Assembly: GCF_032191835.1 (NCBI RefSeq)
Contig: NC_083237.1
Coordinates: 19,654,001 to 19,718,000 of the forward strand
Reading direction: 5' to 3'
From: Heteronotia binoei
Lineage: Eukaryota
DNA: 64,000 nucleotides
Each line of letters starts with the position of its first letter. Position 1 is the first letter of the stretch. Both the position numbers and the translations under genes were made by a program. The notes beneath the pieces are model-generated. The model was not told the origin of the DNA. It did not search any database and saw only the letters and a list, made by a program, of their open reading frames with translations. Of the stretch, positions 15,696-61,871 are shown piece after piece.

Positions 15696-16121
15696 ATGTC
15701 TCCCTCCGGCTACGCCCTTTGCCTCCTGCTCCTGGTGGCGGCCGTCTGGCTGTGGCTGCCCTGCTGCGAAGGCAAGCGCTTCCGACACTTCCTGAGCAAG
15801 CACCAGGACAACCCCAAGTCCTACTATGGCGATGACAACAACTACTGCAACAACATGATGCCCCGCAAGGGCCTTAGATGCCAGAGGAGAAACACCTTCA
15901 TCCATGCCACGGAGCGGCAGCTGAGGTCCATCTGCAATCGTGGAGGGCAGATCCAGAACGGCATCACCACCAGCAGGGACATATTCTCCATCACCACCTG
16001 CAAACGGAAGAGGAGGGGCTGGTTCAGGAGGCAGTGCAGGTACAACGGGAAGAGCAAGACAAGGAAAATCCGGGTCTTTTGCAGGAAAGGCAAGCCGGTC
16101 CGCTTCCTCTCCCACCTGTAG
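15696..16121 (+). CDS. RNase A superfamily protein 1 (141 aa; secreted, cationic, catalytic Lys/His replaced)
   Basis: Signal peptide MSPSG...CCEG; FLSKHQD (His12 motif), YCNNMM, CQRRNTFIH (CKxxNTF-like), six Cys, PVRF in place of PVHF. Single coding exon after acceptor AG at 15664-15665. Confidence 0.93.
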   Translation: MSPSGYALCLLLLVAAVWLWLPCCEGKRFRHFLSKHQDNPKSYYGDDNNYCNNMMPRKGLRCQRRNTFIHATERQLRSICNRGGQIQNGITTSRDIFSITTCKRKRRGWFRRQCRYNGKSKTRKIRVFCRKGKPVRFLSHL

Positions 16122-16431
16122 CCTCATGAGAAAGGCGGCTGCTCCTCCCATCGGGGAAATAAGAGCCCCTCTGGCTTCTCTGGCTCGCCGCTCGATGCCC
16201 TTGCATCTCTCACAGCACCCAGAGCTCATCATAATGCTCTGCAAATTCTTACCCATCCCTTCAAATATAAAGCACCAGCTAAGCAGCTGGTGATGTCTCC
16301 TCGCCTCTTTGGGATGAAGACAAAGCACGGTCATGGCGCTCGGCCACGGCAAAAGCCCCAGTTGCTCCTGCAGCCTCCAGAAGGTGTCTGTCTCGTTCCT
16401 GTTTCCCTGCTGCTGCTCCCCCCCCCTATAC

Positions 16432-16437
16432 AATAAA
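16432..16437 (+). terminator. Polyadenylation signal of gene 1
   Basis: AATAAA followed ~20 nt later by GT-rich tgttgtgttg; same context in genes 2-4. Confidence 0.75.
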
Positions 16438-16567
16438 GGCATTTATCATAATGAATGTTGTGTTGAATTCCTTGCACTGGACCACCCTGTGGTTTTTCCC
16501 AGGAAGATACGGTTTCAGAGATTAGCCGTGTTGGTCTGCAACAGAGCAGCTCGGTTTGAGGCCAGGA

Positions 16568-17234
16568 CGTCACCGTGTTGACAGGACCACGGAGGAGAAA
16601 CTCAGCCACAACAAAGAAAAAACTCTCTGCATAAAATACAATACTAGCTTGTTATGAATAATAAGTATCACAATACAAAAAAGAATATCGCCAGTACACA
16701 TCCTCTGAGTCATTCCAAGTTAAAACCTCATAAGGTCCACAATGCTCCTACGGGCCTTATGTGGCTCAAGGTCACTATATTAAATTCAGTACAGGGTTTG
16801 GAAAAAGGGTCCAACGGAGAACCAGTCTGCTTTGCAAGCCGTTTCGGATCTCAAATCCTTCTTCTAGGGACCAATCTTGTGAATATTGTACAGTTTTCTA
16901 GGTCCAGTAGTGCCAAAAATATTCAGTCATCAACTGTGTCAGTCCTGAGTTCCTAGCTTCCTCTAATTTTCATTCATAATAGCGGAAATGCCATAGTGAA
17001 ATACAATCCTTGTCAGCAATGCAGCAATATTGACATACTGGGGATGTGTGTGGGGGATGCCTGTGTTGTTGACAAGGATTCTATTTCACTATGGCATTCC
17101 CGCTATTAGGCATGAAAATTAGAGGAAGCTAGGAATTCAGGACCCACATGGTTGATGACTGATTATTTTTGGCACTACTGAACCTAAAAAATTGTATAAT
17201 ATTCTCAAGATTGGTCCCTAGAAGAAGGATTTGA
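16568..17234. mobile_element. Junction insert A/B: Penelope-like element remnant ending in a ~384-bp palindrome (16851-17234)
   Basis: Arms of ~165 bp (tcaaatccttcttctagggacc... / ...ggtccctagaagaaggatttga) around a ~50-bp spacer. Minus strand reads ccctagaagaaggatttgagatccgaaacgg, resembling a pLTR hammerhead motif. Confidence 0.6.
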
Positions 17235-20200
17235 CCCATCCAGTCCAACACTCTGTGTCACACAGTGGCCAAAAAACCCAAGTGCCATCAGGAGGTCCAC
17301 CAGTGGGGTCAGGAGAAGAGAAGTCCTCACACAATGGCCCCTCACAAGCACCAAGAATACGGAGCATCACTACCCGAGACAGAGAGTTCCAACGATAAGC
17401 TGTGGCTAATAGCCACTGATGGACCTCTGCTCCATATGTTTATCCAAATAAAACTTTGTTGGACTTAAAGGTGCCACTGGACTCACACTTTGTTCTCATG
17501 GATTTTGTTTGTCTGATGTAGTGGGATCTAGACTGTATGAAGGATGGGATAATTTGGGCAGAGACTGGGGAAAATGGAAGGAATATTCATTTAGCGGAGT
17601 GCTCAACGCAGCGGTGACACGAAGGGTATCGTTATCTTTGCAAAAACTAAAGTGAGCCCTTTATTCTTAGAAACTGAATTCTAGTCAGGGTAGAGACAGG
17701 ATTCTAATCTAACTAGGATGGACAGAGATGCAGAAAGTGTGTCTTGCCCTCCCAGGGTCAAGATGGAGAAGAGCGTGAAGAGAAGGCGTCAGCTGAAAGA
17801 AAGGAAGATTCTCCGAGAGTAAAAGGTGAGACATTGAAGGAATAGCAGCAGAAAGGAAGGATGTTTGGGGTCCTGACCTCTCCATCTTGCTGATTCTCTA
17901 TAGCCCCCTCCCCCGAAGTCCATGGCTCAGAGACAGTGCAAAGTTCTTCACTTCCAACAAAAACACAGTTGTGTGATTCCATGATGTCATTTCCTGGTAT
18001 CCATATTATTCAATGAACCCCCCCTCCTCCAAGTTTTCTCCTCATCACTCCATTGAGGGTGGGTGGGTGCCAAGCAGTGGGGACGGGAGGTGACAACCTG
18101 GTAAGACTAGCTCCAGGTAATGCAAACTTATGCTGGAATGTCAGTCTGTAGGCAGACACAAAATCCCAATTTAATTTCTTCTGCAAGAGAGGCAAATGCT
18201 GCAATGCTAAGGACTTTTTCTTGGAAATTAGGTTGCCAACCTCCTGCTTGGTTCTGGAGAGCTCTCCAAATTACACCTGATCTCCAGACATCAGTTCCCT
18301 TGGAGAAAGTGGCTGCCAGGTCTACTTCAAATGCCCTCCAACGGAGCCCTGAGATTGTCTTTGCTGGGCATTTTTCAAATGTAAGAGCTTCTGAGGCAAG
18401 GGTGCCCAGCTCTGAGTTGGGAAATTCCAGACGATTTAAGGGTGGAGCCAGGGGAGGGTTCAATTTGGAGAGGAGAGGGACCTCAGCAAGGTATAATGCC
18501 ACAGAGTCCAGCTGCATGGGTCAGGATGCAGCTGGAGTTCTGGAAGCCTCACTTCAAGAAGGATGTGGACAGAATGGAGGAAGTGCAGAGGAGAGTGACG
18601 AGGATGATCAGGGGCCTGGAGACCAAGCCCTAGGAGAAAAGGCTGAGGGAGTATGGAATGTCCAGTGTGGAGAAGAGGAGGTTGAGGGGGGACATGATGG
18701 TTCTCTTGAGGTATCTGAAGGGCTTGCTCTTGAGGAGGGCAGGGAGTTATTCCTGTTGGCAGCAGAGGAGATGACTTACAACAATGGGTTCCAACTAAGG
18801 GCAGGTAGGTACCGGCTGGACATTAGGAAAACCTAGGAGAGCCAGTTCGGTGTAGTGGTTAAGTGTGCGGACTCTTATCTGGGAGAACCAGGTTTGATTC
18901 CTCACTCCTCTGCTGGCAGCTGCTAGCATGGCCTTGGCTCAGCCATAGCTCTGGCAGCGGTTGTTCTTGAAAGGGCAGCTGCTGTGAGAGCCCCCTCCAG
19001 CCCCACCCACCTCACAGGGTGTCTGTTGTGGGGGAGGAAGGTAAAGGAGATTGTGAACCTCTCTGAGACTCTTTGGAGTGGAGGGCGGGATATAAATCCA
19101 ATATCATCATCATCTTCTTTTTTACAGTCAGAGTTGTTCTCTGGAATGGACAGTGGAATGGACTAACGAGGGAGGTAGTGAGCCCCCCCCTCCTCACTGG
19201 CAGTCTTTAAACTGCGGCTGGACAAACCCTTGTCAGGGATGCTCTAGGTTGATCCTAAACTGAGCAGGGGGCTACACTAGAGGGCCTGTGTGCCCCTTCT
19301 AACTCTGTGATTCTATGAAATCACTTCTAATTCCGAGAAGTCTCCAGGGCCACCTGGGCATTGGCCACCCTCCTGAGGTTGTCTATGCTTTGTAGTTGTT
19401 GTCATCAAATCGCAGCTCACTTACAGTGACCCCCAGTAGGATTTTCCAGGCGAGAGAGGTCCAGAGGTGGGTTGCTGTGGCCTGTCTTCGTGTCATGACC
19501 CTGGTCTTCCCTGGTCTGTGCTGGAACAAATTCAAGATATTCTTCATAACATGCCGTCCTCTCTAAACTTTAGAGAGAAGTGGGCAAAAGATCTAACCAG
19601 AGAGGAACCAAACCTTTTGTAACACCTAATTTGGGGAACTCTTTGTGTGTTCCAACACAGGTCAGTTGGTGGTTTACATAACCAACAGGAGAAGGTTGTA
19701 AAAGGAGGCTTCCGATATTTTTTCAGGAGGCAGGTCAGGAAACGGGAAGGATTAGCCCAGAGTGGGGGTTGTGACAAGACCTCTTGTGGGAAGATTCCAG
19801 TGGAAGCCAGGGCCTGTTGGGGACATCATGGCCAGATGACTGCCAAATCATAGCCTTCCACATTCAACAGCCTCAGATTCAGGGCCAGTGCATGGGAGTA
19901 GGCAGTTGCCTAGGGCGCCACCTGGCCTGGGGGCACCACTGGATGCCCCCTCTCTGACGCATGACTCTGGCTCCTGACCGCTGTCCCCTTGTCCTCTCCC
20001 ATCACCAAGCTGCCCTCAACAAAGCCAAGCCACCCCCCTCTCCCTGATGTGTGACTTGGCCTCCCACCTCATCCTATCCTGCCACCCTCCTTCCTGGAGT
20101 GGCCAGCAAGCACTTATTCTCACAATTTTTTTTATAACATTACAATGTTTTTGCAAAATTAAAAATCAGTAAATTAAAAATTTGAAAAGTTTCAAGTTTG

Positions 20201-22114
20201 GTGCTCTTCAATTTCCCTATATTTTTTAATAATGGGGAGGGGGCGTTAGTGGGTGACTCGCCTACACTGCCCAAAAGCCAAGCACCGGCCCTGCTCAGAT
20301 TAGCTTAGACTCACTGCTCCTTTGACCTTTTTGCCAAACCAAAGAAAAGAAAACCAAAGAAAAACAAATAATCTGCATTCCTCCCAAAGGAAGATGCCCC
20401 TGAATGTAAAACGATCCTCCTCAACAAAGTTATTCACAAAACTGTACAAAACTGTAACTTGTACATGAATTTCAGTGGGTGCTGGGGTTGCCAAACTCCA
20501 GATGGGGTCTGGAGATCTCCTGGAATGATAGCCGAACTCCGGACTGCAGTGATAAGGTCCCCTGGAGAAAATGATTCTGCTGCTTTTAGGTGGGCTCTGT
20601 AGCACACTGAAGGTTTTCTAGCGGCTGTCAGAGCTGCCAACTCTGGGTGATTCCTGGAGATTTAGGGGGGGGCCCTGGGGGGGAGGGGGGGTTTAGGGAG
20701 AGAAGGAACCGCAGTAGGGTAGAATTCCATGAAGTCCACCCACTGAAGCAGCCATTTTCTTCATGGGAAGTGTCCTTTGGAGAACAGTTGTGATTTTGGA
20801 AGATCTCCACGCCTTACCTAGTTGATAGCAACCCTAGGCTAAGGCAATGTACTAGGACCTAACCAGGGGTTGAATTCAGCAGGAGCTCACAGGAGCACCG
20901 CTCCTGAACCTCCAGCCAGGGTCTGCATGCATTGGGGAGTTCTCTCCCTGCTTCACACAGATCCCGGGGTATATGCAAATGAGATATGCTACTGAGCTCC
21001 TGAACCTTTTTTTCTACAAAATGACTCCTGGACCTAACAAATCATTACCTATAAAATGAGAAAGAGAGGAGTAAATGAATATATGGAGCTCTTTCATGCG
21101 ATGGTGTAGTAGTGTAATGTAGTGGCTAAAAGCAGCAGACTGTAATATGGAGATCCGGCTTTGATTTCCCTCTCTTCTACATGAGGCCTGCTGGGTGACT
21201 TTGGGTCAGTCACAGTTCTCTCAGAACTCTCCCAGGCCGCCCTACAGCTCTCATTTTGGGCAGGAGCTCACAGGAGCAGAGCTCTGGAACCCCTAAATTT
21301 TATTGTGTTCTTTCTTCTTAAGCCACCCCTCTCCCCTCCAAAAAATACATGCTTCTTGGCTCCATTGTTCAAATCCACTGTGAGAATTTTGCTGAACTCT
21401 AAGATATGACAAACTTTTCTAATATTTCCCCCCACCAAAAATGGGAAAAAATAACCAAAACATATAAAGCAGATGGATGGAAATCTTCCTCATGCCACTG
21501 TGGCCACAGAGGGGAAAGCAAATTAAAAAGTAAGATGGGAGTAAGGTTTTATTATGACCATTATAATTTGAGAAGCATTTTAAGGTATACGCTGAGCTAA
21601 TAGGATTTAGTACACCTTCGGGCGACGACTGGGGTGTGTGGCAAATGCAAATGAGTTGTGCTAATGAGCTCTGGCATCTCTTTTTCTATTAAATGACCCC
21701 TTCACAGGGTGTCTGTTGTGGTGAGAGGAAGGAAAGACTATTGTAAGCTGCTATGAGACTCATTTGGGTAGAGAAAAACAGGGTTTAAAAACCTTCTCTT
21801 TTTCTGTTCAACTGAGAGCAAATTTTTTGCCACATCTTGACTGATAACAGACAGGCACTTTGGGCCGACTCAGAGACGTCTTTGAAATTGGCCCCAACCC
21901 CCCCTCCAGACAGCAGCATCTGCCCCCCTTCCCTGACCTGTGCTCACCCTGTCCTCTGGGCCAATCCACCCAGCTCAAAAAGCTTCCACTGCCAAAGTGG
22001 TAGCAAACGTTTGGGCTGGCCACCATTTGCCTCCTGGATGTTTGGAAGGGGAAGGACACACATGAGGTGACTTGGCAGTGTGAAAGCGCCAAGCCGCCCC
22101 TAGCTGTTTCTGGC

Positions 22115-22472
22115 TTTTTTTCCTTTTCCTTTTTCAGTTTTATTTATACAAAATGCCTTGAGTGAAAATCAAACAGTAAGAGGAAAAACTGATGATCAGA
22201 TTCCAAGCAAGTCAGTTCCTTTCCCCATCCAAAGGCAACCAGTAACTTGGCATTGTTTGCTCGTATTTTTTCCAGCCCTTTCTTGTAATGTTTCTTTGCA
22301 AAGCGCATGTTCCTCAGGAACTTGGGACCAACCCCCTTCAGAGATTCGTATCCATGTGATCTGGGCTTCTTAATGTCATTTCTGTGCCGTTTGCGAGACT
22401 GGTTGTGAGTGGGGTGGTTCTTGGACTTGGCCATAGCTGAAACCTCCGTCGCCACTGCCGCTGGGACGGCAA
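22115..22472 (-). pseudogene. RPL29: RPL29 processed pseudogene (unit B copy)
   Basis: [20 protein letters not shown]...ANNAK from ATG at 22434; the 5' TOP end is deleted relative to A. Confidence 0.92.
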
Positions 22473-24554
22473 ACTGACGGCTCACAGACGGGATGGGGAC
22501 ACCTCGCTGGGGACCGTGTGGAGGCTCTGAGGTGACTCTTTTTGAGCAGTCCTGCTTTTGGCCACCTCCCAGCTGCCCCAGAATGCCCGTCTGTTCACAG
22601 CCCTTGATTAATAATTGGGAAGGCCACCCAATTGCTTCAGGGCCCCAATCCAGCAGAGGAATGTGTGTAACGTAAGCATATGCATCTTCCTCAGTTTGAT
22701 CACTCATCTACTTAGCCTGCTACATATGGGAACATATGAAGATGCCTTATGCTGAAGCAGACCCTCGGTCCATCAAAGTCAGTATGGTCTACTCAGACTG
22801 GCAGCAGCTCTCCAGGGTCTCAAGCTGAGGTTTTCATGCCTATTTCAGTCCAGCTTAAATATATTACATCTAACCATCTGGTGATATCCCAGAAAACAGT
22901 GCGATAGTTGTCCTGACAGTAGCCATTTCAGACAGGTCTTCTGTTTAAAACTTCTTTGCTTTTGCTCTGGTCAGTGAACAGAAGCAGATCGTGAAGAAGT
23001 GTGACCAAAGCAAGCAGCTCTCTGAAGATTAAGCTATGGGGCCTCTGCCACAGTGAAGGTTGGTGCAAATTCAGTTTAGGCCCTGATATCTGGATAGGGA
23101 TGCCAACCTCCAGGTGAGGCTTAGAGATCTCCTGGAAGTGTACCGTATCACCAGCCTTCAAAGTGCTCCAGAGATGCACACTGGAAAGACAAGGCTCTGC
23201 CTTCAATACATGCTTGGAGAACATGACTGTGGGATTATTTCCTACTATTTAAAATCTCAATTTATAGTAGGGTTGCCAAGTCCAATTTAAGAAATATTTG
23301 GGGACTTTGGGGGTGGAGCCAGGAGACATTAGGGGTGGAGCCAAGATCAAGGCTGTGACAAGCATAATTGAACTCCAAAGGGAGTTTTCGCCCTCACATT
23401 TAAAGGGATGGCACACCTATTCAATGCCTTCCTTCCATAGGAAATAATGAAGGATAGGGGGACCTTCTTTTGGGGCTCATAGAATTGGACCCCCTGGTCC
23501 AATCTTTTTGAAGCTTGGGAGGTATTTTGGGAAGAGGCAGTAGATGCTATACTGAAAATATGGTGCCTCTACCTTAAAAAACAGCCCCCCAGAGCCCCAG
23601 ATACTCGCAGATCAATTCTCCATTATTCTCTATGGGAATAAATCTCCCTAGGAAATAATAGAGTTCCCAGCAGACATTTCCCTCCCCTCCCCCCGCTTTC
23701 TGATGACCCTGAAGAGCGGGGAGGGTCTCCAAACCGGGGGATCACCTGCCCCCACCTGGGGATTGGCAACCCTAACTTATAGTGCTGATGCTCTGACAGA
23801 ACGTACTCAAGAAAAATTTACTGTGTTCTGGTTCCAAATAGTGGAATATCTCACCAAACATAAAATTCTCCCCCCAAAAACCTGTTTTTATCATGATATG
23901 CTCTATCTCTAATATGTTCTGGGCTCACTTTCTCTCCTCTGGTCTGAATAAAAAAAAAACTGTGAGCTCTAAATTGAGTTTGATTAACTGGATTTCTTAA
24001 TAGAATATTGGGACAGTTCTTTGTACATTCCTACAGTAGAATCAGTCAATAGAATGTATTGTCACGGGGTGCTCTTCAGTATAACTGTATGACTGCTCCT
24101 TGGTTCTCTATTTTATGGATTACTCTTTCTCTTTCTTGTTTTTTGTAAAAATGTGTTTATTATATCCTCAGCAAGGCTGCATTATTTGAGGTGACAGATT
24201 ACAGTGTTCTTTATTGCAAACTGAAAATGTGTTAATAAAAAATTGATTAATTAAAAAAAAAGTGCTCCAGAGAAAATGGCACCTTTGGACGGTGGACTCT
24301 ATGGCTAGATTCCAGGTGGAATCCCTCCCCACATTCCCCTCTTCCCAGGTTCCCCCCTCATATCTTTAGGAATTTCCCAATTCAGAGCAGGCAACCCTCT
24401 CTTTAGGAGCAAGGGCTGAACAATTTTTTTCCTTTGGTGAGATTTCAAACCACCTAGGGCCACATCTCAGCTGGGCAGAAAGTTGCTACATGCTGGGTTA
24501 CTAAATAGGGAACTTAGAGGGTTGGAACCGACAACCACAGGTTCTCTGCCGCCG

Positions 24555-24669
24555 GTGAGTGCTGGCTGGCCTTATATAGCAGGAACCCTGGAAGGCAACC
24601 AGGCCAGAGACGGGGATCCTCAACAGTTCTTCTTGAAGGAAGCTGAGAGCACACACATATCGGGTGAGT
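24555..24669 (+). promoter_or_regulatory. Predicted promoter and first exon of gene 2
   Basis: GTGAGT at 24555, TATATAG at 24573-24579, donor GG|GTGAGT at 24664; acceptor AG at 27221-27222. Confidence 0.6.
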
Positions 24670-51836: not shown

Positions 51837-54007
51837 AAAGAGTCATTAACAGGTAGAATTCATTGCCAGAGGAAATGGTGGTGGCTACAAGCATAGAGAA
51901 CTTCAAGAGGGATTAGATAAACATATGGATCAGAGGTCCATCAGAAGAACAGATGGAACTGTGTCTGGGGGCAGTGACGCTCCAGATGCTCGGAGGGATT
52001 GCAAGTGATCTCCAGACTACAGAGATCAACTCCCCTGGAGAGAACGGCTGCTTTGAAGGGTGCACTCTATGGTACTCTACCCCAGAAGGGCCCCGTCTCT
52101 TCCCAACTCCCCTCCCCAGGCCCCACCCCCAATTCACCAGGAATTTCCCAGCCTGAAGTTGGCAACCCTGTGTCTCCACCTGCATTCACCATGGCCTGGG
52201 ATTTCAGTAGCTGAGCAGTATTATTTATCTATTTGGGACACTGCCGGCCAGTGTAGACCAATTGTAGAGGGTGGTGGATCAGTCATCTGGGTCTCTATGA
52301 AGCAGCTTCATATATTTACTTCTGGGGGTGCCAGTGGGGGGGGGGATGCAGGAGGGTTCCCCCCTGAGATTCTAGCATGATGTTGGGTTGCCAGCTCCTG
52401 ACCGGGAAATTCCTGGAGATTTGGGGATGCAGCCTGGGGAGGGCAGGGACCTCATTGGGATACAATGTCACAGAGTCCACCCTCCAAGGCAGCCATTTTC
52501 TCCAGGGAAACTGATCTCTGTTGTCTGGAGATCAGTTATAATTCTGGGAGATCTCCAGGTTCTACCTGGAAGATGGCAACCGTAAACAAGAGAGGTTGGT
52601 TGGTATGAAAGGAATCAAATAGCCCCTCTTATTTCTGACAGAACCCTTATGTCCAGGGTCAAAGATTAAGATCTTTGTCAAGTTTAACAGCCCTCCATGG
52701 TATTTCAGTAATTTTTAGGAGTGGGGGATAGGGTTGCCACATCTGTGTTGGAAAATACCTGGAGATGTTGGGGATGGAGATGGAAGAGGGCAGGGTTTGG
52801 GGGAGAGCAGGGGTCACAGTCTAGAGCAATGCCCTAGAATCCACCCTCCAAAGCCACCATTTTCTCCAGGGGAGCTGATCTCTGCCAGCTGGAGATCAGT
52901 TGTAAAAGTGGAGATCTCCAGATCCCACTGGGAGGTTGTTGGTACTGTGACCCTCATAATATCAGCCCCCTAAACTGTAGCTTACAGCTCCATGGCTTAG
53001 AGTGATAAAGCTGCAGTACTGCAGTTTGAGCTCTCTGCTCACGTTCAATTCCAGCGGAAGCTGGGTTCAGATAGATGGCTCCAGGTTGCCGCAGCCTTCC
53101 ATCCTTCCGAGGTTGGTAAAATGAGTACCCAGCTTGCTGGAAGGCAAGGGCAAACCACCCCGTAAAAAAGTCTGCCGTGAAAACAGCATGATGCGATGTT
53201 ACTCCAAAGTCGGAAATGACTGGTGCTTGCACAGGGGATTACCTGTACCTTTTAAAACTGTAGCTTACTTAGTTTGTGCAAAAATCTTAGGGTTGCCAAC
53301 TCCAGTCTGAGAAGTTCCTGGAAATTTGGAGGCAGTGCCTGGGGAAGGCAGTATTTGGGGATGGAGCTCAGAATGATGGATAGGGTGCTGCTGATCCCAC
53401 TATGCAAAGCTGCTATTCCCCTCCCCCCCTGGAGAACAGGTCTCTATAGTTTGGAGTCCAGTTGTAATTCCAGGAGGCCTCCAGCTCCTGCCTGGAATTT
53501 GGCAAAACTTCCTTGCAGTAATTCCGGCAGCATAGGCTGAGGGTCTTTCCTTCTCTGTCCGTTTGGTGTAGTGGTTAAGTGAGCTGGACTGCTGTCTGGG
53601 AGAACCAGGTTTGATTCCCCAGTTCTCCACTTGCAGCTGCTGGAATGGCCTTGGGTCAGCCGTAGCTCTTGCAGAGCTGTCCCTGAAAGGGCAGCTTCTG
53701 GGAGAGCTCTCTAAGCCCCACCTCACTCACAGGGTGTCTGTCGTGGGGGCGTAAAGTGAAGGAGATTGTAAACCACTGTGAGATTCAGAGCGAAGGGCAG
53801 AATATCAATCCGATATCCAGGGGTCGTTTAATAGAAAAAGAGGTGCTGGAGCTCATTGCCACAACTCATTTGCATATGCCACACAGCCCTGACATCACCG
53901 GAAGGTGCACTAAATTATATCAGCTCAGCGTCAAACTTAAAATGTTTCTGTATAATTGCCACAATAAAACCTTGCTCACGTCATACTTTTTCATTTACTT
54001 TCTCCTT

Positions 54008-54475
54008 CAGGGCCGACGCGTGGAAGTAGCCCAAGCAGGCAGCTGCTTAGGGTGCCACTTGGCCTCGGGGTGCCACAAAGTGCCCCCTCTCCCCACGCCT
54101 GCTGCTGTCCTGACTTAGCCGAGGCTTCCCGACGCTTGGGAGGCCTCGGCAAAGTTGGGGCGGGGGGCAGCAGCAAGTGCACTCAGAGCCGGCTCCGTGT
54201 GTTCTAGACTTTGCTGAGGCCTCCCAAGGCTCAGGAGGCCTCGGCAAAGTCATGGGACATTGCAGCGAGCATCCTCAGAGCTGGCTCTGAGCGTGCCTGC
54301 TGCCTTCTGGACTTTGCTGAGGCCTCCCTTGGCAAAGTCAGGGGGTGGGTGACAGTTACGTCATCATGATGTCATTGGGTTGTGCATGCAAAGCGTGTGC
54401 ATATATATTGATTGGGGGGGGGGCAGAGAAGTGGAGTTCGGCCTAGGGTTGCAGGCACCCCTAGCACTGGGCCTG
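54008..54475. mobile_element. hAT MITE (CAGGGCC TIR) with internal tandem subrepeats, D-specific
   Basis: Ends cagggccgacgc / gcactgggcctg; degenerate TSD of ttctccta, which is single in A-C. Confidence 0.7.
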
Positions 54476-54746
54476 TTCTTCTAGGTGGCCACAGTGGCAT
54501 GAGGAAGATTTCCATCTGTCTGCTTTAGATGTTTTGCTTATTTCCCCATTTTTTTGTGGGGAAAAATATGAGAAAGTTTGTCAAATCTTAGGGCTCAGCA
54601 AAATTCTCACAGGGGGTTTGAAAAAGGGAGCCCAGAAGCAAGTATGTTTTTTTATTGGGAGGGGGGAAGAAAGAAGGAGCACAATGAAATGTAGTGGTTC
54701 TGGAGCTCCGCTCCTGGGAGCTCCTGCCCAAAATGAGGCCTGCCAA

Positions 54747-54945
54747 CAGTGCTTTTTTTGTAGAAAAAGTTCAGCAGGAAGTCATTTGCATTGCACATCT
54801 GTAGCATCACCATTGTTTTGCACAGGCCTTTTAAAAAGGAAAAGCCCAGCAAGAACTCATTTGCGTATCAGGCCACACCTCCTGACACCAAGCCAGTCAG
54901 AACTGCATTCCTATGCGTTCCTGCTTAAAAAAAAAAAAAGCCCTG
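54747..54945. mobile_element. Octamer-family hAT MITE, independent reverse-orientation insertion in D
   Basis: TSD CCTGCCAA; one intact ATTTGCAT at 54784. Confidence 0.8.
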
Positions 54946-54952
54946 CCTGCCA

Positions 54953-55644
54953 TAGGCTTGCCAATCCCCAGGTCCTAGTGGGGGTTCTTCCGCTTTCCCA
55001 GGCTCCTTCCCGCCCCCAGTCAGCTGGCAGGAAGGGGAAGCCCCGCCCCCAGAGGACCATGTGCCTTTCCCCCTCCGGTGGCTTCAGTCTCCAATTGAAA
55101 GGCTTCCTCTTGGGATGGTGTGTCTGTGTTACTTTGGAGAAGTTGGCAGCAACTTGTGAGTAGAGAGGCTAATCCCTCGCTTCAGAGTTGCCAGAAATGG
55201 GGGTGGGGGGAGGAAACGGAAACGTCTGCTGAGCATTTCATTATTCCTTTTGTGGAGATCGATTCTCATAGGGAATTGATCTGGAGTTTCGGGGGCTCTG
55301 GGGGAGCTGTTTTTTGAGGTAGAGGAACTAAATTTTCAGTATAGTATCTAGTGCCTATCCCCATAGTACCCCCAAGGTTCAAAAAAATTGGACCAGGGGG
55401 TCCAATTCTATGAGCCCCCAAAGAAGGTGCCCCTATCCTTCATTATTTCCTATGGAAGGAAGACATCTAAAAAGGTGTGCTGTCTCTTTAAATGTGATGG
55501 CCAGAACTCCCTTGGAGTTCAATTCTGCGTGTCATACCCTTGTTCCTGGCTCCATCCCCAACGTCTCCTGGCTCCACCCCCAATGTCTCCTGGCTCCACC
55601 CCCAAAGTCCCCAGATATTTCTTGATTTGGACTTGGCAACCCTA
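54953..55644. mobile_element. hAT element (TAGGGTTGCCA-type TIR) ending 36 bp before exon 2 of gene 4
   Basis: Perfect TSD GCCTGCCA at 54945-54952 and 55645-55652. Confidence 0.85.
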
Positions 55645-55710
55645 GCCTGCCAATATCATCTTCTTCTCTCGCCTTTGCAGGCCAGGAGCTCAGCTCCGAA
55701 GGTCCCGGGG

Positions 55711-56136
55711 ATGTCGCCCTCTGGCTACACCCTTTGCCTCCTGCTCCTGGTGGCGGCCGTCTGGCTGTGGCTGCCCTGCTGCGAAGGCAAGGACTACCGA
55801 GGCTTCCTGAAGAGGCACCAAGACAACCCCAAGTCGAACTACGGCGGCAACAACAACTACTGCTACAACATGATGCGCCGCAAGGGTCTGAAGTGCGCGG
55901 GGAGCAACACCTTCATCCACGCCAGCGAGGAGCAGCTGAAGTCCATCTGCAACTCCAGGGGGCAGATCCTGAAGGGGATCACCACCAGCAAGACCCTCTT
56001 TGCTATCACCGTCTGCCAGCGGCGGAGGAGGGGCTTGCGCTGGAGGCTGTGCAGGTACAAGGGAAAGAGCAAGATCAGGAGGATCCGGGTCATTTGCAAG
56101 AAAGGCCTGCCGGTCCGCTACATCTCCTACCTGTAG
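55711..56136 (+). CDS. RNase A superfamily protein 4 (141 aa; cationic, catalytic Lys/His replaced)
   Basis: FLKRHQD, MMRRKGL, CAGSNTFIH, six Cys, PVRY. Confidence 0.93.
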   Translation: MSPSGYTLCLLLLVAAVWLWLPCCEGKDYRGFLKRHQDNPKSNYGGNNNYCYNMMRRKGLKCAGSNTFIHASEEQLKSICNSRGQILKGITTSKTLFAITVCQRRRRGLRWRLCRYKGKSKIRRIRVICKKGLPVRYISYL

Positions 56137-56441
56137 CCTCATGGGAAAGGTGGCCGCTCCTCCCATTGGGCAGATCAGAGCCCTTGGCTTCTCTGGCCCA
56201 CCGCTCCATGCCCTTGCATCTCTCGCAGCACCCAGAGCTCATCGTAACACTCTGCAGATTATTACCCATTCCTTCAAATATAAGGCCCCAGCTAAGCTGC
56301 TGGCGATGCCTCCTTGCCTCTTTGGGACAAGGACGTAGCACGGCCATGGCGCTCGGCCACGGCGAAAGCCCCAGTTGCTCCTGCAGCCTCCTGAAGGCGT
56401 CTGTCTCGTTCCTGCTTTCCTGCTGCTGCTCCCCCCCATAC

Positions 56442-56447
56442 AATAAA
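56442..56447 (+). terminator. Polyadenylation signal of gene 4
   Basis: AATAAA in the conserved context. Confidence 0.75.
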
Positions 56448-58424
56448 GGCATTTATCATAATGAATGTTGTGTTGATTTCCTTGCACTGGACCGCCCTGT
56501 GGTTTTCTCCCGGAAGATTCGGTTTCAGAATCATAGATTAGCTGTGTCAGTCTGCAGCAGAGCAGCTCGATTTGAGGCTAGGAGCAGCCCATAGAGTCCG
56601 GTAGGTGGTGTCCTAGAGAGGACATTTAGCCCAACCACCTCCTCCATCCAGGAATTCTAAAGCTCCCAACAGAAAACAGTCCAGTTATGATAATGTACTG
56701 TGACCTACAAGATGTAAAAATGGGAGACAAAGGTGGAGAGAAGTGATGTACAGCAGGACTTCTACATTTCAAATGTGAGTTTGAAAAAAAGTCTTAAGGG
56801 GAATGGGGAAGAGGTAGAGGGTTTGCCCTTGGACTTGGAAATGACATCACAGGACAAGAAATCCCAGGGTGTGACATCACATCTGCCTTCTTCCTAGGCT
56901 GCTCCCTCAATGCCACCCTCCCCAGGCAGTGCCCCCAAATCCATATGTTTATCCAATCCCCACAGAGCCCCTCTGGCTTCTCTGGTTCCAGGAAGTTCCC
57001 TGAGCCAGAGTTGGGCCAATGAGGAGTGCAAGCAGACACACAGCCCCTCTTTGGTGACTGGACACCTATCCCTTTAACCAGGGCGCTGGGTGACAGGCAG
57101 GAATTCAGCAGAGGAAAACAGGCCCAGTGGGTGGTCATGATGAGGAAAACTTCACCTGAAGAATTTTTTAAATCCAGAGTGGTCTTGCCAAAGAATACGA
57201 CAACAGCAATGCCCAAGGCCCATACAGGGTCGCCGGCTTCCAGGTGGGTGTAGCACATAGACCCAAGGTATTGTAACCTAATAACTCTAGAACTCAAATG
57301 AATTACAAAACATATACTTCTTAGATCAAAATTCATAACACACCAACAATCAATGCTGAATATAAATGCCCATATATACAGGCGTACAGTATGAAGTTCT
57401 CATGCAAAATGTCTCTCTGTATGAATGAAAAGTCTTTCTACGTACATAAAGAACTTTTAATGCAAAAAAGTCTCTCCATGTTAATGAAGAATCACTCCAA
57501 GTTCATCCAATACCAAAACGGTCGATATCTTCAGTTTTTCATGATACCTTAGGTTAAGTCAAGTCAAGTCAAATTGTATTGTATTAGCCGTTGGCCATAA
57601 CAAGATTGCAAAACTTTCAAGTACTACAAAAAAATATTACAGTAAAATACCAGAAATCTAAAACTACAATTGCATGAGTAAAATGATAGACAATAAGATA
57701 GGAATAAGATAAACTGGTTTACAGGTTAACCCTTATGAGACTGCCCTGGCTCTGATCTTCTTAGCAGCAAAAGCAAAAAGAGCAGCTGTACAGGATGCAA
57801 ATTCATCTATATCTGATAACAAGTACATATGTGTTGCAGTCACTTTGGTGTAACCTTCTCCCTAAGCCTGCAGGTGGGACCTGGAGATCTCCAGCGTTTA
57901 CAACTGCTCTCCAGCTGGCAGAGATCAGCTCCCCTGGAGAAAATGGCTGCTTGGAAGGGTGGCCTCTAGGGCCCCTCCCCAAACCCCGCCCTCTCCCAGC
58001 TCCACCCCCAAGGTCTCCAGGTATTTTCCAACACAGACCTGGCAACCCTAGATGAGAGCCATGATGGGGACCAGGCCAGGATAAAGTTACAATTTCCATG
58101 TTCACCTGTCACAGGGGTGGCCAACGGCAGCTCTCCAGATGTTTTTTTGCCTACAACTCCCATCAGCCCCCAGCCATTGGCCATGCTGGCTGGGGCTGAT
58201 GGGAGTTGTAGGCAAAAAACATCTGGAGAGCTACCATTGGCCACCCCTGACCTATCACATGAAATAACTCATAAAATTAACACAATTGACAAACTGATCT
58301 GTGGTTTTAGAGTTACTAACCTCCTGATGGGGCTTGGAGGTCTCCTGGAATCCCAACTGATCTCCAGTTGACAAAGATCAGCTCCTCTGGAGAATATGGC
58401 TGCTTTAGAAGGTAGCCTCTATGC

Positions 58425-58736
58425 CAGGGGTGGCTACACTGTGGCTCTTTCACACGCATGGTGTGGCTCTTGAAACCCCCACTGCCCCACTGGCTGACTT
58501 GGAGATGGCATTTGTCTCTTAAAATCACTTCTCCAAGGCAGCTTGGAGAATGCATTTGAAGTTAAAGTTGTTTTCTTCCTACACCTCTCTCTTCCCCTTC
58601 CTTCCTTCCTTCCTTCCTTCCTTCCTTCCTTCCTTCCTTGTGGCTCTCAAACATCTGACATTCATGCTTTGTGGCTCTCAAACATTTGACATTTATTCTA
58701 TGTGGCTCTTACTTTAAGCAAGTTTGGCCACCCCTG
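58425..58736. mobile_element. hAT MITE containing a (TTCC)n microsatellite (~58597-58638)
   Basis: Ends caggggtggc / gccacccctg; perfect TSD CTCTATGC. Confidence 0.8.
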
Positions 58737-60240
58737 CTCTATGCCTTAATACCCTGCTGAGGTCCCTTGCTTTCCCCAAATCCCACCCCCAAATCTCAAG
58801 GAATTTCCTAACCTAGCCTAACCAGATGTTCCCAGGGAGCCCACGAACAAGGCATGAAGTAATTGCCCCCTGGCCTAGATGTATTGCCCTAATCCAGGGG
58901 TGGCCAGCGGTAGCTCTCCAGATGTTTTTTGCCTACAACTCCTATCAGCCCCACCCAGCTTGGCTGATGGCTGGGGTTGATGGGAATTGTAGGCAAAAAA
59001 CATCTGGAGAGCTACCTTTGGCCACCCCTGCCTAATCTATCTAGGCTAACCCGATCTAATCAGATCTCAGAAGCTCAATTGGGTGGGCCCTGGATGGTAT
59101 TTGGATGGGAGACCACCAAGGAAGTCCAGGGGAGTGACACGGAGGCAGGCAATGGCAAACCACCCTGAATGTCTCTTGCCTTGAAAAGCCCACCAGGGCT
59201 GTGACTCAACAGTAAACTACCACAACGGCTACTACTGTGGGTCTTATTTAGAAATCTACTGCCTCTAAACCTGGAGGTTCCATTCTGCTGTTGTGACTAA
59301 TATGATCCTTTGGTAGACTCCATGAATTTCCCTGATCCTAGGGTTGCCAACGATGGGCTGGAAAATTCCTGGAGATTTGTGGGCGGACCCTGGGGAGGGT
59401 GGAGTTTGAGGTGGAGAAGGAGCCATCTCAGTGAAGCATAAGGCTGCAGAGTCCACCCTCCAAAGCAACCATTTTATCTGGAGGGGGGCATTCCCCAGGT
59501 GGGGGCAGGGGATCCCCTGGTTTGGAAGCCCTCCCCCCACTTCAGGGTTATCAGAAAGAGTGGGGTTTTTTTGAATGTCCGCAGGGCACTCCATTATACC
59601 CTATAGAGCAGGGGTGGCCAACAGTAGCTCTCCAGATGTTTTTGCCTACAACTCCCATCAGCTCCAGCCAATGACCATGCTGGCTGGGGCTGATGGGAGT
59701 TGTAAGCAAAAAACATCTGGAGAGCTACCGTTGGCCACCTTGCTATAGAGACTGGTCCCCATAGGGAATAATGGAGAATTGATCTGTGAGAATCTGGGAC
59801 TGAGGGGGGTGGGGTCTGTTTTTTGAGCTAGCAGCACCAAATTTTCATCATAGCATCTGGTGCCACTGCTCAAAAAACACTCCAAATTTAAAAAAAGATT
59901 GGAGCAGAGGGTCCAATTCTATGAGCCCCCAAAGAAGGTGCCCCTGTTCTCCATTATTTCCAGTGAAGATAAGGCATTAAAAAGGATCATGGCCCCTTTA
60001 AATGTCATGGCCAGAAGTCCTTTTAGAGTTCAATTGTGCTTGTCACACCCTTGCTCCTGGCTCCACCCCCAAAGTCTCCTGGTTCCACCCTCAAAGTCTC
60101 CTGGCTCCACCCCCAAAGTCCTCAGGTATTTCCTGAGTTGGGCCTGGCAACCCTAAGGGGGACCGATCTCCATTATCGGGAGAAGAAGAAGAAGAATCCC
60201 AGCAAATCTGTAAGCTGCGCCTGGAGGCTGGCTACCCTCT

Positions 60241-60520
60241 GAGAGCCAGTTTGGTGCCGTGGTTAAGTGCGTGGACTCTTATCCGGGAGAACCGGGTTTG
60301 ATTCCCCACTCCTCCACTTGCATCTGCTGGAATGGCCGTGGGTCAGCCATAGCTGTAGCAGAGATTGTCCTCGAAAGGGCAGCTGCTGTGAGAGCCCTCT
60401 CAGCCCCTCCCACTTCACAGGATGTCTGTTGTGGGGGAGGAAGGCAAAGGAGATTGTGAGTTGAGACTCTGATTCAGGGAGAAGGGCTGGGTATAAATCT
60501 GCAATTCTTCTTCTTCTTTT
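60241..60520 (+). mobile_element. Squam3-like SINE
   Basis: gagagccagtttggt head; tataaatctgcaattcttcttc tail. Confidence 0.8.
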
Positions 60521-60833
60521 TACTTCTGGGTAATTACTGGTAACTGGTCTAGATCCCTCCTCATGCTAAACAAACACAATCCTTTATTGGCATATATCAG
60601 ATTATAATTAAGGCAAAAAAAGAGATACAGAAATAACAAAATAAACCAGTCACATACAGCTATAATTGGACAATCGATCCTTGATTACCAGACTCAAGAA
60701 TAAAGCGACCTTTTCAGTCATTTCAGAAGATGGCATACTTTTGCAGCATTTGAGCAACTTGTCATATTGAGCACAATTGGGTCTACAAACCTAAGGCGTA
60801 CAGAATCATATGGGGAGCAGTAAAGAAGAACAT

Positions 60834-61045
60834 GGGGCGGTGGCTCAGTGGTAGAGCATCTGCTTGGTAAGCAGAAGGTTGCAGGTTCAATCCCCGGCAT
60901 CTCCAAATAAAAAGGGTCCAGGCAAATAGGTGTGAAAAACCTCAGCTTGAGACCCTGGAGAGTCGCTGCCAGTCTGAGTAGACAATACTGACTTTGATGG
61001 ACTGAGGGTCTGATTCAGTAGAAGGCAGCTTCACATGTTCACATG
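60834..61045 (+). mobile_element. Full-length Squam2-like tRNA-derived SINE
   Basis: ggggcggtggctcagtggtagagc...ggttcaatccccggcatctcc head; ttcacatg tail. Confidence 0.75.
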
Positions 61046-61114
61046 AATCAACTTGTTTGAAGTTGCATGTACAAAGTTTTAATGAGAGTGGGATTTTCTT
61101 TTATCTGCCAAAGG

Positions 61115-61300
61115 CAGGGCTTTTTTGGTAGAAAAAACCCTGGCGGGACTCATTTGCATAATAGGCCACACACCCCTGAGGTCACCATTGTTTTGCACAG
61201 GTCTTCTTTGCAGAAAAAGCCCAGCAGGGACTCATTTGCATATTGGGCCACACCCCCTGACACCAAGCCAGCTGGAACTGCGTTCCTGTGTGTTCCTGCT
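61115..61300. mobile_element. Octamer-family hAT MITE (reverse orientation) ~150 bp upstream of gene 5
   Basis: cagggctttttt left end; ATTTGCAT at 61152 and 61234; right TIR degraded. Confidence 0.75.
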
Positions 61301-61454
61301 AACCCCCCAACCATAGGTAACTGCTGATGGAATAGTATTACATCTGGCAAGAGTAAATGCTCTACGCAATTGTCCTCACAGGGTATCTCCGGGTGAGGCT
61401 CAACGCTCAATCCCTCTGTCTTTGTTCTCTTGCCTTTGCAATCCACAGGGCCCC

Positions 61455-61871
61455 ATGATGTCACCCAAGGGCCAGACCCTTTGCCTCCTGCTAACGGTGG
61501 CCTGCCCGTGGCTGCCCTGTGAGGCCATCGAGTATGTTGAGTTCCTGAAAAGGCACCTGGACTACCCCAAGTCCACCTTTGGAAATGACAACGCCTATTG
61601 CGAGGCGATGATGCACGACAGAGGCATGTTGTGTTGGCAGAGCAACACCTTCGTCCACGCCAGCGAGTACGAGGTGCAGTCCCTCTGCAGCTCCAGGGGG
61701 CACCTGGTGGCAGAACTGGAGAGGAGCTCCATCCCCTTCCCCATCACCGTCTGCTCCAGGAGAGGGAAGAAGCCCCAAGGGGCTTGCAGCTACGAGGGGA
61801 AGAGCCTGACCAAGGAGATCTGGGTCACCTGCCTGAAAGGCCTCCCCGTCTACTTCAACAAATATGGGTAG
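61455..61871 (+). CDS. Divergent RNase A superfamily protein 5 (138 aa; near neutral, catalytic Lys/His replaced)
   Basis: Signal peptide MMSPKG...PCEA; FLKRHLD, YCEAMM, CWQSNTFVH, six Cys, PVYF; pyrimidine tract and acceptor AG at 61447-61448. Confidence 0.9.
   Translation: MMSPKGQTLCLLLTVACPWLPCEAIEYVEFLKRHLDYPKSTFGNDNAYCEAMMHDRGMLCWQSNTFVHASEYEVQSLCSSRGHLVAELERSSIPFPITVCSRRGKKPQGACSYEGKSLTKEIWVTCLKGLPVYFNKYG

Follow-up and report, generated by a model that had tools for sequence, protein, structure and literature searches.

A window of 64,000 nucleotides of Heteronotia binoei DNA contains five RNase-like coding exons, all on the plus strand. Four of them encode type A proteins: g1 (15696 to 16121; 141 amino acids), g2 (27253 to 27678; 141 amino acids), g3 (41789 to 42196; 135 amino acids), and g4 (55711 to 56136; 141 amino acids). 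The fifth, g5 (61455 to 61871), is separated from g4 by 5.3 kb and encodes a type B protein of 138 amino acids (137 from the second ATG). In each case the coding region is a single open reading frame (ORF) with no intron, stop, or frameshift; g3 carries an in-frame 18-nt deletion, and g4 is the least diverged of the type A copies. NCBI gene models of H. binoei agree exactly with ORFs of the window; the C-terminal 135 residues of one such model (P0003) are identical to g3. A tblastn search with all five queries (E < 0.01) retrieved no extra copy or fragment from the window, which contains no N, and likewise no further gene ("g0") upstream of position 4525, the outer edge of the first tandem unit.

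All five products matched the Pfam RnaseA family (PF00074) at 60 to 69 bits, against a cutoff of 23.1 (E values of 1e-16 to 1e-19). A highly conserved hydrophobic leader can be read at each N terminus, and every mature part has six Cys residues in invariant alignment columns. An AlphaFold2 model of g1 (pLDDT 92.6) is predicted to adopt the RNase A fold, with the turtle RNase 2zpo as the best Foldseek match (TM 0.90; rmsd 1.9 Å), followed by angiogenins. The sequence-only reading of this locus, which had described five intact RNase A-fold genes and proposed structural modeling, is borne out on this point. The mature type A products are strongly basic, with pI values of 10.5 to 11.6 and net charges of +21 to +27 (+26, +27, +21, and +25 for g1 to g4); g1 and g2 contain 20 Arg residues each. 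By the high-cationicity criterion for antimicrobial RNases, g1 to g4 group with such proteins, whereas g5 (pI 8.25; net charge +2) does not.

Self-BLAST resolved four plus-strand tandem duplication units of ∼12 to 14 kb each between 4525 and 56583 (approximately 4525 to 16567, 17232 to 28444, 28769 to 42976, and 43763 to 56583). Unit-to-unit identity is 83 to 98%, and each unit ends in one type A coding exon. A 3′ splice site and 30-nt 5′ untranslated region (UTR) of g1 are predicted from the sequence alone at 15645 to 15695 (pyrimidine tract, with the AG at 15664 to 15665). Acceptors are likewise predicted for the other genes, located 30 nt upstream of the start codon in g2 (27253), g3 (41789), and g4 (55711) and 6 nt upstream in g5 (61455). 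A candidate AATAAA signal lies 311 nt past the g1 stop (16432 to 16437), with equivalents for g2 to g5 at 27969 to 27974, 42503 to 42508, 56442 to 56447, and 62164 to 62169, all on the plus strand; the predicted acceptor and the AATAAA are each preserved across the five genes. In the NCBI model of g3, the putative exon 1 (30554 to 30622, plus strand) falls within sequence derived from a retroelement and has a GT donor, and homologues of it with the GT occur in the other units (6327 to 6395, 18526 to 18594, and 46562 to 46624). A type A unit would then comprise a putative noncoding exon 1, an intron of 9 to 11 kb, and a single coding exon. The NCBI models of g1 and g3 begin with unusual N-terminal extensions, and the g1 model leaves out the leader. 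Three metatranscriptomic runs matched the window, only through short contigs that are 90 to 95% alike and fall on interspersed repeats. From 55800 onward, the g4 coding exon had a read depth of zero, and the preceding bins overlap a stretch rich in repeats; such repeat-only matches (with no run listed for g5) say nothing either way on the expression of g1 to g5.

In the catalytic triad of RNase A (His12-Lys41-His119), only His12 is left in these genes, encoded by CAC in all five. Position 41 is occupied by Gln in g1 (CAG, 15882 to 15884), Arg in g2 (CGG, 27439 to 27441) and g3 (CGG, 41975 to 41977), Ala in g4 (GCG, 55897 to 55899), and Trp in g5 (TGG, 61635 to 61637). Position 119 is Arg in g1 to g4 (CGC at 16101, 27658, 42176, and 56116) and Tyr in g5 (TAC at 61851). 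The CKxxNTF signature is accordingly replaced by CQRRNTF, CRRRNTF, CRRRNAF, CAGSNTF, and CWQSNTF in g1 to g5, respectively. Asn44 is retained throughout, and Thr45 is retained except in g3, which has Ala (GCC). Alignment by phmmer to the green-turtle RNase 2zpo and to angiogenins similarly placed Q at the CK lysine and R at the PVH histidine. The codons at positions 41 and 119 and the T45A change in g3 are thus exactly those first reported. A later His within a C-terminal SHL motif had been raised as a possible substitute for His119; it is Tyr in g4 and Ser, Tyr, or His in orthologues and, because it is not conserved, is unlikely to serve in this role. By analogy with angiogenin, we infer that none of the five proteins would cleave RNA to a meaningful extent, with Lys41 and the His119 general acid both gone, because the angiogenin variant K40Q is reported to have no enzymatic activity (PMC3973227), while K40I retains 0.7% and H114R 1.6% of activity (PMC3493651).

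Phylogenetic analysis separated the five genes into two lineages. The type A clade comprises sequences from geckos, a skink, a lacertid, an amphisbaenian, and snakes (SH-aLRT of 96 in one tree; support of 81/95 in another), and its gene tree follows the species tree. Within the gecko part of this clade, g1 to g4 are monophyletic (support of 100/99). The type B clade consists of g5 and sequences from Gekko and Eublepharis (100/98). Gene order agrees with this assignment: in Gekko japonicus (L001) and Eublepharis (L002), a type B gene comes after type A in the same orientation, as g5 does after g4. For Sphaerodactylus, Zootoca, and Rhineura, the 10-kb range searched yielded no type B gene. In a range of ∼10 kb to each side, the other species sampled showed a single type A copy each, apart from Gekko japonicus with two; H. 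binoei has four. Type A is therefore a pan-squamate, angiogenin-like, strongly basic RNase A-fold protein with three disulfides; g1 to g4 are a lineage-specific, 4-fold tandem amplification of this single gene, and g5 represents, in H. binoei, an older, gecko-wide paralogue (type B) of near-neutral charge. With the phylogeny and gecko synteny comparisons suggested by the sequence-only reading, its separately expanding family of five is reduced to the tandem expansion of g1 to g4, with g5 belonging to a separate lineage that has orthologues in Gekko and Eublepharis.

The same comparison indicates when the catalytic residues were lost. Gln41 occurs in every type A gene examined outside Heteronotia (gecko, skink, lacertid, amphisbaenian, and snake), and Trp41 is shared by the type B genes of Heteronotia, Gekko, and Eublepharis, the three that were found. 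The loss of Lys41 is therefore ancient: it predates g1 to g5 and was already present in their ancestors. Loss of Lys41 can no longer be taken as a mark of the expansion, as had been proposed. Type A genes of every squamate examined also have Arg or Lys in place of Gln11. In contrast, His119 is kept in type A and type B genes outside Heteronotia, except for an Arg in the extra Gekko japonicus copy. What is new in H. binoei is the loss of His119, twice and independently, by CAC to CGC on the g1-g4 stem and by CAC to TAC in g5. Three independent His119 losses are seen among the geckos sampled, tandem duplicates accounting for two. Net charge of the mature protein also differs, at +12 to +21 in type A orthologues versus +21 to +27 in g1 to g4.

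Outside Heteronotia, type A is under purifying selection despite Gln41 (NG86 ω of 0.13 to 0.39 among orthologues; P < 1e-4). For the H. binoei copies, ω estimates depended strongly on the codon-frequency model, and our statements are limited to those robust to model choice; pairwise YN00 and maximum-likelihood estimates (Biopython) were unstable. In branch models, ω of the g1-g4 clade was 1.7 to 2.1 times the background under all six codon-frequency models, a difference that was significant in five (p of 0.0009 to 0.025) and not significant under GY F3x4 (p = 0.076). The best-fitting model, MG94-F3x4, gave 0.45 for g1 to g4 versus 0.26 for the background, and the former was below 1 at p = 6e-4; over all models the clade estimate ranged from 0.27 to 0.94, and whether it falls below 1 depends on the model. 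Pairwise NG86 ω among g1 to g4 was 0.63 to 0.87, not significantly below 1. The g5 branch gave values of 0.85 to 2.1 across models, indistinguishable from 1, and comparison of g5 with Gekko type B gave an NG86 ω of ∼0.9 to 1.0, again not significantly below 1.

The state of the exons speaks for maintenance of g1 to g4. In neutral simulations at the observed divergence, the probability of four ORFs remaining open was 0.005, that of all 24 Cys being kept was 0.013, and that of both was ∼1e-4, although gene conversion between copies may contribute to open frames and lowers the independence of the simulated lineages. No frameshifting indel is present in the type A coding exons, whereas the 3′ flanks show 1 to 8 indel events per 300 nt. 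Between g1-g4 copies, divergence is 2.6 to 3.8% in the putative signal-peptide part, where dN is 0 to 0.018, versus 7.8 to 20.7% in the mature part. Since the joint retention of frames and Cys residues is very unlikely under neutrality, g1 to g4 are maintained proteins. The earlier claim of maintenance thus holds for these four and not for g5, whose terminal-branch ω is ∼1. For g5, the probability of a frame still being open under neutrality is ∼0.3 (a rough estimate without simulation); this gene may be functional or newly released from constraint. Mature-peptide divergence among type A copies is 1.3 to 2.4 times that of the 3′ flank and ∼1.6 to 2.1 times that of kilobase-scale intron blocks. 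We do not claim positive selection from this yardstick: synonymous sites are raised too, the first 300 nt of the flank are probably 3′ UTR, divergence in the 120 nt immediately before the exon matches that of the mature part, and gene conversion of the flanks would be another explanation.

Taken as a whole, the data incline us, with some reserve, toward an old, basic RNase-fold lineage whose H. binoei copies were amplified and kept as noncatalytic, secreted proteins of a host-defense type. Its type A ancestor was basic and constrained, with Lys41 already replaced by Gln. In H. binoei, His119 changed to Arg before the amplification, protein change became faster, and the basicity of the type A copies rose further. 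The four proteins, kept folded and with secretion leaders, would act through their cationic surface, either by binding and disrupting microbial membranes or by binding polyanions. Such activity would never have depended on catalysis, as in eosinophil cationic protein (ECP) and zebrafish RNases, and duplication may have allowed or favored loss of the remaining catalytic apparatus. Antimicrobial action that does not rely on catalysis is on record for this superfamily (PMC5964141), and judged from charge and from this analogy, host defense is the most likely role of g1 to g4.

The proteins could instead be maintained as noncatalytic binders outside immunity, such as reproductive-tract or egg proteins, in the manner of mammalian RNases 9 and 10 or the turtle egg-white RNase, or secreted chemical signals, a possibility we consider unlikely though worth keeping in view. 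Mammalian noncanonical RNases are mainly tied to male reproduction (PMC5964141; PMC3845642), the closest solved structure to the g1 model is an egg-white RNase, and a 7tm_3 receptor gene adjoins the cluster in Eublepharis, although this neighbor may be a coincidence. The faster divergence of the mature part relative to the leader and the kilobase-scale noncoding flanks would fit reproductive or signaling proteins too. The extreme Arg-rich charge of g1 to g4, however, is seen more typically in antimicrobial RNases, for example ECP.

A further reading, which we also regard as a minority prospect, is that type A proteins are working enzymes whose transition-state cation is now supplied by position 11 instead of position 41 (Gln in place of Lys41 together with Arg or Lys in place of Gln11), with catalysis dropped only after tandem duplication. 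This shift would explain the constraint on His12 and His119 across squamates after the loss of Lys41. The series on which it would draw consists of His119 to Arg on the g1-g4 stem, the same change arising independently in the additional Gekko japonicus copy, and the replacement of His119 by Tyr in g5. Superfamily-wide, loss of Lys41 showed no tendency to go with loss of His119.

Relaxed constraint would instead have the genes functionless since the loss of His119, drifting toward pseudogenes and intact only for lack of time. The pairwise ω values for g1 to g4 and for g5 versus Gekko type B, the g5 branch estimate of ∼1 in all models, the T45A change in g3, and the apparently free variation at position 41 (Q, R, R, A) are all in keeping with such drift. 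We nevertheless find it quite improbable, though it may hold for g5 alone, given, for g1 to g4, the joint simulation probability, the absence of frameshifting indels from exons flanked by indel-bearing sequence, the low signal-peptide dN, the rejection of ω = 1 by the best-fitting codon model, and the intact predicted splice and poly(A) signals. Least credible, and very improbable in our view, is that the five proteins are still ribonucleases with an active site rebuilt from Arg/Lys11, Arg at 41 to 43, Arg119, or the C-terminal His: His12, Asn44, and Thr45 (not in g3) are kept, constraint on His12 and His119 in type A outlasted Lys41 by a long time, a persistence suggesting continued use of the site by the Gln41 form, and Arg or Lys at 11 accompanies Lys41 loss across the superfamily (24/46 versus 4/68), but this association is not significant on phylogenetically independent pairs (median p = 0.25; underpowered), Arg or Tyr cannot stand in for the His119 general acid (H114R keeping its 1.6% of an already weak angiogenin activity), K40Q is called inactive, the C-terminal His is variable, and position 41 diversified (Q, R, A) after His119 was lost, as expected of an unused site.

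With respect to novelty, no description of squamate noncanonical RNases was found in the literature searched. Nonmammalian vertebrates are said to have only 3 to 5 RNase genes (PMC3845642), and the RNase literature consulted describes noncanonical RNases only in mammals. Loss of Lys41 or His119 is nonetheless common in sauropsid RNase A genes, occurring in turtles, tuatara, galliforms (including a cluster, P0043 and P0169, without catalytic residues), other geckos, and a snake venom-gland RNase. Because such losses recur, the gecko case is less singular than first suggested, while the lack of an earlier description in the literature searched still stands. The locus opens no new category of biology; it would be an enzyme fold kept for a nonenzymatic job, and dead members of enzyme families inform on other uses of a fold. 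What it adds is that squamates possess an ancient noncanonical RNase lineage that lacks Lys41 yet is strongly conserved. If inactivity and antimicrobial or other binding prove true, the progression from Zootoca and Gekko type A to Gekko copy 2 to g1-g4 would be a convenient natural series that could separate catalytic from noncatalytic functions of secretory RNases. Were the cation-shift reading true, it would be a replicated natural series of an RNase scaffold going from catalysis dependent to catalysis independent.

The nearest known relatives are the automated NCBI "ribonuclease-like" models of type A from Zootoca vivipara, Rhineura floridana, Crotalus, Gekko japonicus, and Eublepharis macularius. 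These squamate orthologues resemble g1 to g4 in sequence (51 to 70% identity), single coding exon, three disulfides, Arg/Lys11, high charge, and locus arrangement. They differ in keeping His119 (bar the extra Gekko copy), in evolving slowly, and in their lower charge and fewer copies. The "Toxicofera" venom-gland ribonuclease (10.1101/006031) was considered as a counterpart and rejected as belonging to a different lineage.

Angiogenin (RNase 5) shares with g1 the three-disulfide subfamily and fold (TM 0.80 to 0.87; 33 to 39% identity), and its variants K40Q, K40I, and H114R coincide with natural gecko substitutions. In contrast to the gecko proteins, which are much more basic and have lost two of the catalytic residues, angiogenin is an active though weak tRNA-cleaving enzyme whose biology is mostly catalysis dependent. 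The textbook examples of catalytically dead RNase A superfamily members are mammalian RNases 9 to 13. Unlike these, the gecko genes keep His12, the NTF part, and a canonical N-terminal helix, and g1 to g4 are highly cationic and recently amplified. The five gecko genes nest among sauropsid angiogenin-like RNases, in trees without labeled RNases 9 to 13, and their best hits are to sauropsid RNases and angiogenins, which argues for an independent origin.

Finally, ECP (RNase 3), the zebrafish RNases, chicken RNase A-2, and RSFR are Arg-rich, fast-evolving, tandemly duplicated host-defense RNases, as are g1 to g4 in the first three respects. Of these, RSFR, termed a "ribonuclease homolog," is located in the heterophil granules of chicken (PMC5473982). 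Unlike the gecko proteins, ECP, the zebrafish RNases, and chicken RNase A-2 retain the catalytic triad. Even so, the membrane-directed bactericidal action of ECP and the zebrafish RNases does not need catalysis (PMC5964141), and the shift of the gecko copies to extreme positive charge parallels that of primate ECP.

The five RNase A-family genes of the window (g1 to g5) lie on the forward strand at 15696-16121, 27253-27678, 41789-42196, 55711-56136, and 61455-61871, respectively, and none contains a stop or frameshift. Their products (135 to 141 residues) match the Pfam RnaseA model with 60 to 69 bits (cutoff, 23.1), and the mature part of each has six cysteines. By sequence, the closest solved structures are green-turtle egg-white RNase (2zpo; E value, 2e-20) and the angiogenins. 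The RNase A fold was borne out for g1, whose AlphaFold2 model (pLDDT, 92.6) has a TM score of 0.90 on 2zpo, with angiogenins next best. A tblastn scan across the window, which contains no N bases, retrieved no extra RNase copies or fragments. Of the His12/Lys41/His119 triad, His12 is encoded by CAC in 5/5 genes. Position 41 reads CAG (Gln), CGG (Arg), CGG (Arg), GCG (Ala), and TGG (Trp) from g1 to g5; position 119 is CGC (Arg) in g1 to g4 and TAC (Tyr) in g5, and Thr45 is replaced by Ala in g3 only. A previous sequence-only reading had reported exactly these residue and codon states, and its description of intact RNase-fold genes with lost catalytic residues agrees with the open frames, Pfam matches, and codons.

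That reading treated the five genes as one separately expanding family, which holds for g1 to g4 but not for g5. A HMMER search of the full library gave 243 RNase A relatives; closer ones came from word-index searches and names from cluster look-ups. g1 to g4 cluster with gecko "ribonuclease-like" genes (Euleptes, Gekko japonicus, G. kuhli, Eublepharis, and Sphaerodactylus) in a clade, here type A, that also takes in a skink, a lacertid, an amphisbaenian, and snakes (SH-aLRT, 96 in one tree; support of 81/95 in another). The type A tree is largely unresolved and compatible with the species tree, with the non-gecko squamates as one clade and the gecko genes as a polytomy. Phylogeny upheld g1 to g4 as an expanding tandem group: they are monophyletic (100/99), and the Heteronotia lineage therefore acquired the four-fold amplification after diverging from Gekko. 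g5 belongs to a second lineage, type B, which a scan of the genomic loci of six orthologues brought to light. It forms a clade (100/98) with a Gekko japonicus orthologue (L001:21028-21576; 70% identity) and one from Eublepharis (L002:14134-14691; 64% identity). In both species, the synteny check proposed with that reading found type B a few kilobases downstream of type A, with both genes in the same orientation; g5 thus represents a paralogue that is separate and older.

Joint absence of Lys41 and His119 had been read as the hallmark of the family. Both residues are indeed missing from g1 to g5, but the loss of Lys41 is ancient and pan-squamate. All type A genes outside H. binoei read C-Q-x-x-N-T-F, with Gln41 encoded by CAG or CAA, and Lys41 was therefore lost in type A before the squamate radiation. 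Similarly, all type B genes share C-W (Trp41), which places their loss before the Eublepharis/Gekkonidae split. All other type A and type B genes keep His119 (CAC), apart from an additional copy in Gekko japonicus, a species in which two tandem type A copies precede type B. This long-branched copy (P0183; L008:14641-15207) reads PVR (CGC), while its sister about 16 kb downstream (L001:12649-13146) keeps His119; the His119-to-Arg change in a duplicate parallels the H. binoei history. H. binoei has lost His119 in both paralogues, by His to Arg on the g1 to g4 stem and by His to Tyr in g5. The sampled geckos thereby show three independent losses, two of them in tandemly duplicated genes. After the loss of His119, position 41 of type A diversified (Q, R, R, and A) and Thr45 disappeared from g3, as expected if the catalytic site were no longer used.

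Such losses are widespread in sauropsids, and the case is less singular than it first seemed. On a superfamily tree of 140 representatives, the state at position 41 changed at least 22 times and that at position 119 at least 15 times. Affected genes occur in turtles, tuatara, galliform birds, and other geckos, and a Psammophis venom-gland ribonuclease has also lost catalytic residues. Loss of Lys41 and His119 is thus recurrent in sauropsid RNases. A second H. binoei gene, annotated "ribonuclease pancreatic-like" (P0041; L007:10001-10444) and located elsewhere on the same 68-Mb scaffold, has Met41 and Arg119. In Rhineura floridana, a third noncanonical RNase A-like gene (L006:19949-20350, minus strand; Leu41 and Glu119) adjoins type A. 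Representatives P0080 and P0110 are nearest to it, and it shares 35% identity with P0051, the "venom-gland ribonuclease" of Psammophis, which places the "Toxicofera" RNase in yet another lineage without catalytic residues. In Eublepharis (L002:2-508, minus strand), Sphaerodactylus (L003:1009-1494, minus strand), and Rhineura (L006:3-404, minus strand), type A is preceded at a distance of about 9 kb by a canonical RNase (CKE[IV]NTF) in the reverse orientation. Its PVHY motif is visible only in Sphaerodactylus, as the other two ORFs are cut by the locus end. The 15 kb of the window that precede g1 contain no counterpart. In Eublepharis, a 7tm_3/NCD3G gene (class C GPCR, V2R/CaSR-like; L002:17739-20429, minus strand) flanks the RNase cluster.

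The K40Q variant of angiogenin has been called enzymatically inactive (PMC3973227); K40I and H114R leave 0.7% and 1.6%, respectively, of an already low activity (PMC3493651). g1 to g5 combine both kinds of change (positions 41 and 119), so meaningful RNase activity would be very unlikely. The His of the C-terminal SHL, once considered as a catalytic stand-in, is Tyr in g4 and Ser, Tyr, or His in orthologues and is not a credible substitute. Immediately before His12, at the position of Gln11 in RNase A, every type A and type B gene has Arg or Lys. In an alignment of 143 RNase A representatives, Arg/Lys11 co-occurs with a residue other than Lys at position 41 (24/46, versus 4/68 with Gln11). An underpowered comparison of 11 phylogenetically independent pairs gave 3.6 in the same direction versus 0.1 opposite (median p, 0.25). 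As a lead only, relocation of the cation from position 41 to 11 could explain why other squamates conserved His12 and His119 after losing Lys41.

Purifying selection on type A orthologues outside Heteronotia is clear (NG86 omega, 0.13 to 0.39; P = 1e-4 to 1e-13). For the mature parts of g1 to g4, pairwise omega is 0.63 to 0.87, not significantly below 1. Branch codon models on a 13-gene tree gave the g1 to g4 clade an omega 1.7 to 2.1 times the background under all six codon-frequency variants, a rise that was significant in five (p = 0.0009 to 0.025) and not in GY F3x4 (p = 0.076). Absolute clade omega depends on the variant (0.27 to 0.94). The best-fitting variant, MG94-F3x4, gave 0.26 for the background, 0.45 for g1 to g4 (omega = 1 rejected, p = 6e-4), and 1.17 for g5, whose branch omega was not distinguishable from 1 in any variant. 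In a model-independent check, unconstrained evolution was simulated along the g1 to g4 tree, with as much nucleotide change as was observed; four open frames had P = 0.005, retention of all 24 cysteines P = 0.013, and both together P of about 1e-4. Frameshifting indels are present in the flanks and absent from the coding exons. The leader part is nearly frozen between copies (2.6 to 3.8% difference; dN, 0 to 0.018), against 7.8 to 20.7% for the mature part. Given the simulation, indels, and leader conservation, we conclude that g1 to g4 are kept as folded, leader-bearing proteins whose mature surface is under relaxed selection, diversifying selection, or both. Maintenance, proposed for all five genes, thus stands for g1 to g4, while the g5 branch is not distinct from neutrality in omega. 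Divergence of the mature part exceeds that of the 3' flank and of kilobase-scale intron blocks (g1 versus g3 nonsynonymous p-distance, 0.130, versus 0.059 in the flank; P = 6e-4). This excess hints at positive selection, which we do not claim: divergence is raised at synonymous sites too, the adjacent flank probably represents 3' untranslated region, and gene conversion of the flank would lead to the same pattern.

RNase A genes usually have just one coding exon, which an intron separates from a noncoding exon 1. A pyrimidine tract and AG precede every coding exon (AG-to-ATG distance, 30 nt in g1 to g4 and 6 nt in g5), and AATAAA follows each stop by 291 to 311 nt. From these sequence signals, the layout of g1 to g5 would be the usual plan with a predicted noncoding exon 1. 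Self-BLAST resolved four tandem units of about 12 to 14 kb (83 to 98% identity between units) ending in g1 to g4, at approximately 4525-16567, 17232-28444, 28769-42976, and 43763-56583, respectively; g5 lies outside them, 5.3 kb downstream of g4. Unit 3 is longer because an AT-rich block (32000-36000; GC, 0.32, with strong GC and AT skew) is inserted in its intron; the insertion carries LINE reverse-transcriptase-like ORFs (34274-35241). A minisatellite (14959-15577; internal repeats about 80 bp apart) shortly before the coding exon of g1 is expanded in unit 1 relative to the other units, and a minus-strand ORF there (15326-15637) encodes a repeated peptide. NCBI models named "ribonuclease-like [Heteronotia binoei]" include the sequences of g1 and g3, and the first exon of the g3 model maps with 100% identity to 30554-30622; the window thus comes from Bynoe's gecko (Gekkonidae). 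That exon sits in a retroelement-derived ORF fragment with an in-frame ATG and GT donor, and homologues occur in each of the other units (6327-6395, 18526-18594, and 46562-46624). The g3 model (P0003) has a 33-residue N-terminal extension and the g1 model (P0002) skips the leader; both look like annotation artifacts or unusual transcripts. In three metatranscriptomic runs, about 8% of sampled words of 55400-61900 were present. Their contigs on 55400-61399 were short, 90 to 95% alike, and confined to interspersed repeats. From 55800 on, the g4 coding exon had no read depth, and its first 90 bp share a bin with repeat-derived depth. The run search with g5 listed no RNA run.

Net charge is +12 to +21 in type A orthologues across squamates, with H. 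binoei g1 to g4 at the extreme (+21 to +27; pI, 10.5 to 11.6; 20 Arg in both g1 and g2), and near neutral in type B. Antimicrobial action directed at membranes rests on high cationicity in the RNase A superfamily, and ECP and zebrafish RNases do not need catalysis for it (PMC5964141). Noncanonical RNases of mammals likewise function without catalysis (PMC5964141, PMC3845642), and RSFR, a "ribonuclease homolog" of the chicken, belongs to the proteins of heterophil granules (PMC5473982). The best-supported reading of g1 to g4, from their charge and these precedents, is a noncatalytic, secreted, cationic family of host-defense type that was amplified in H. binoei and pushed further toward positive charge. 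Alternatively, their role may be reproductive, egg related, or in signaling. The literature searched contained no published description of this squamate noncanonical lineage, whose genes are annotated just "ribonuclease-like." It adds a member to an already known kind, the noncatalytic RNase A paralogues, and the squamate type A and type B genes form a useful series, provided by nature, in which the active site is lost step by step.
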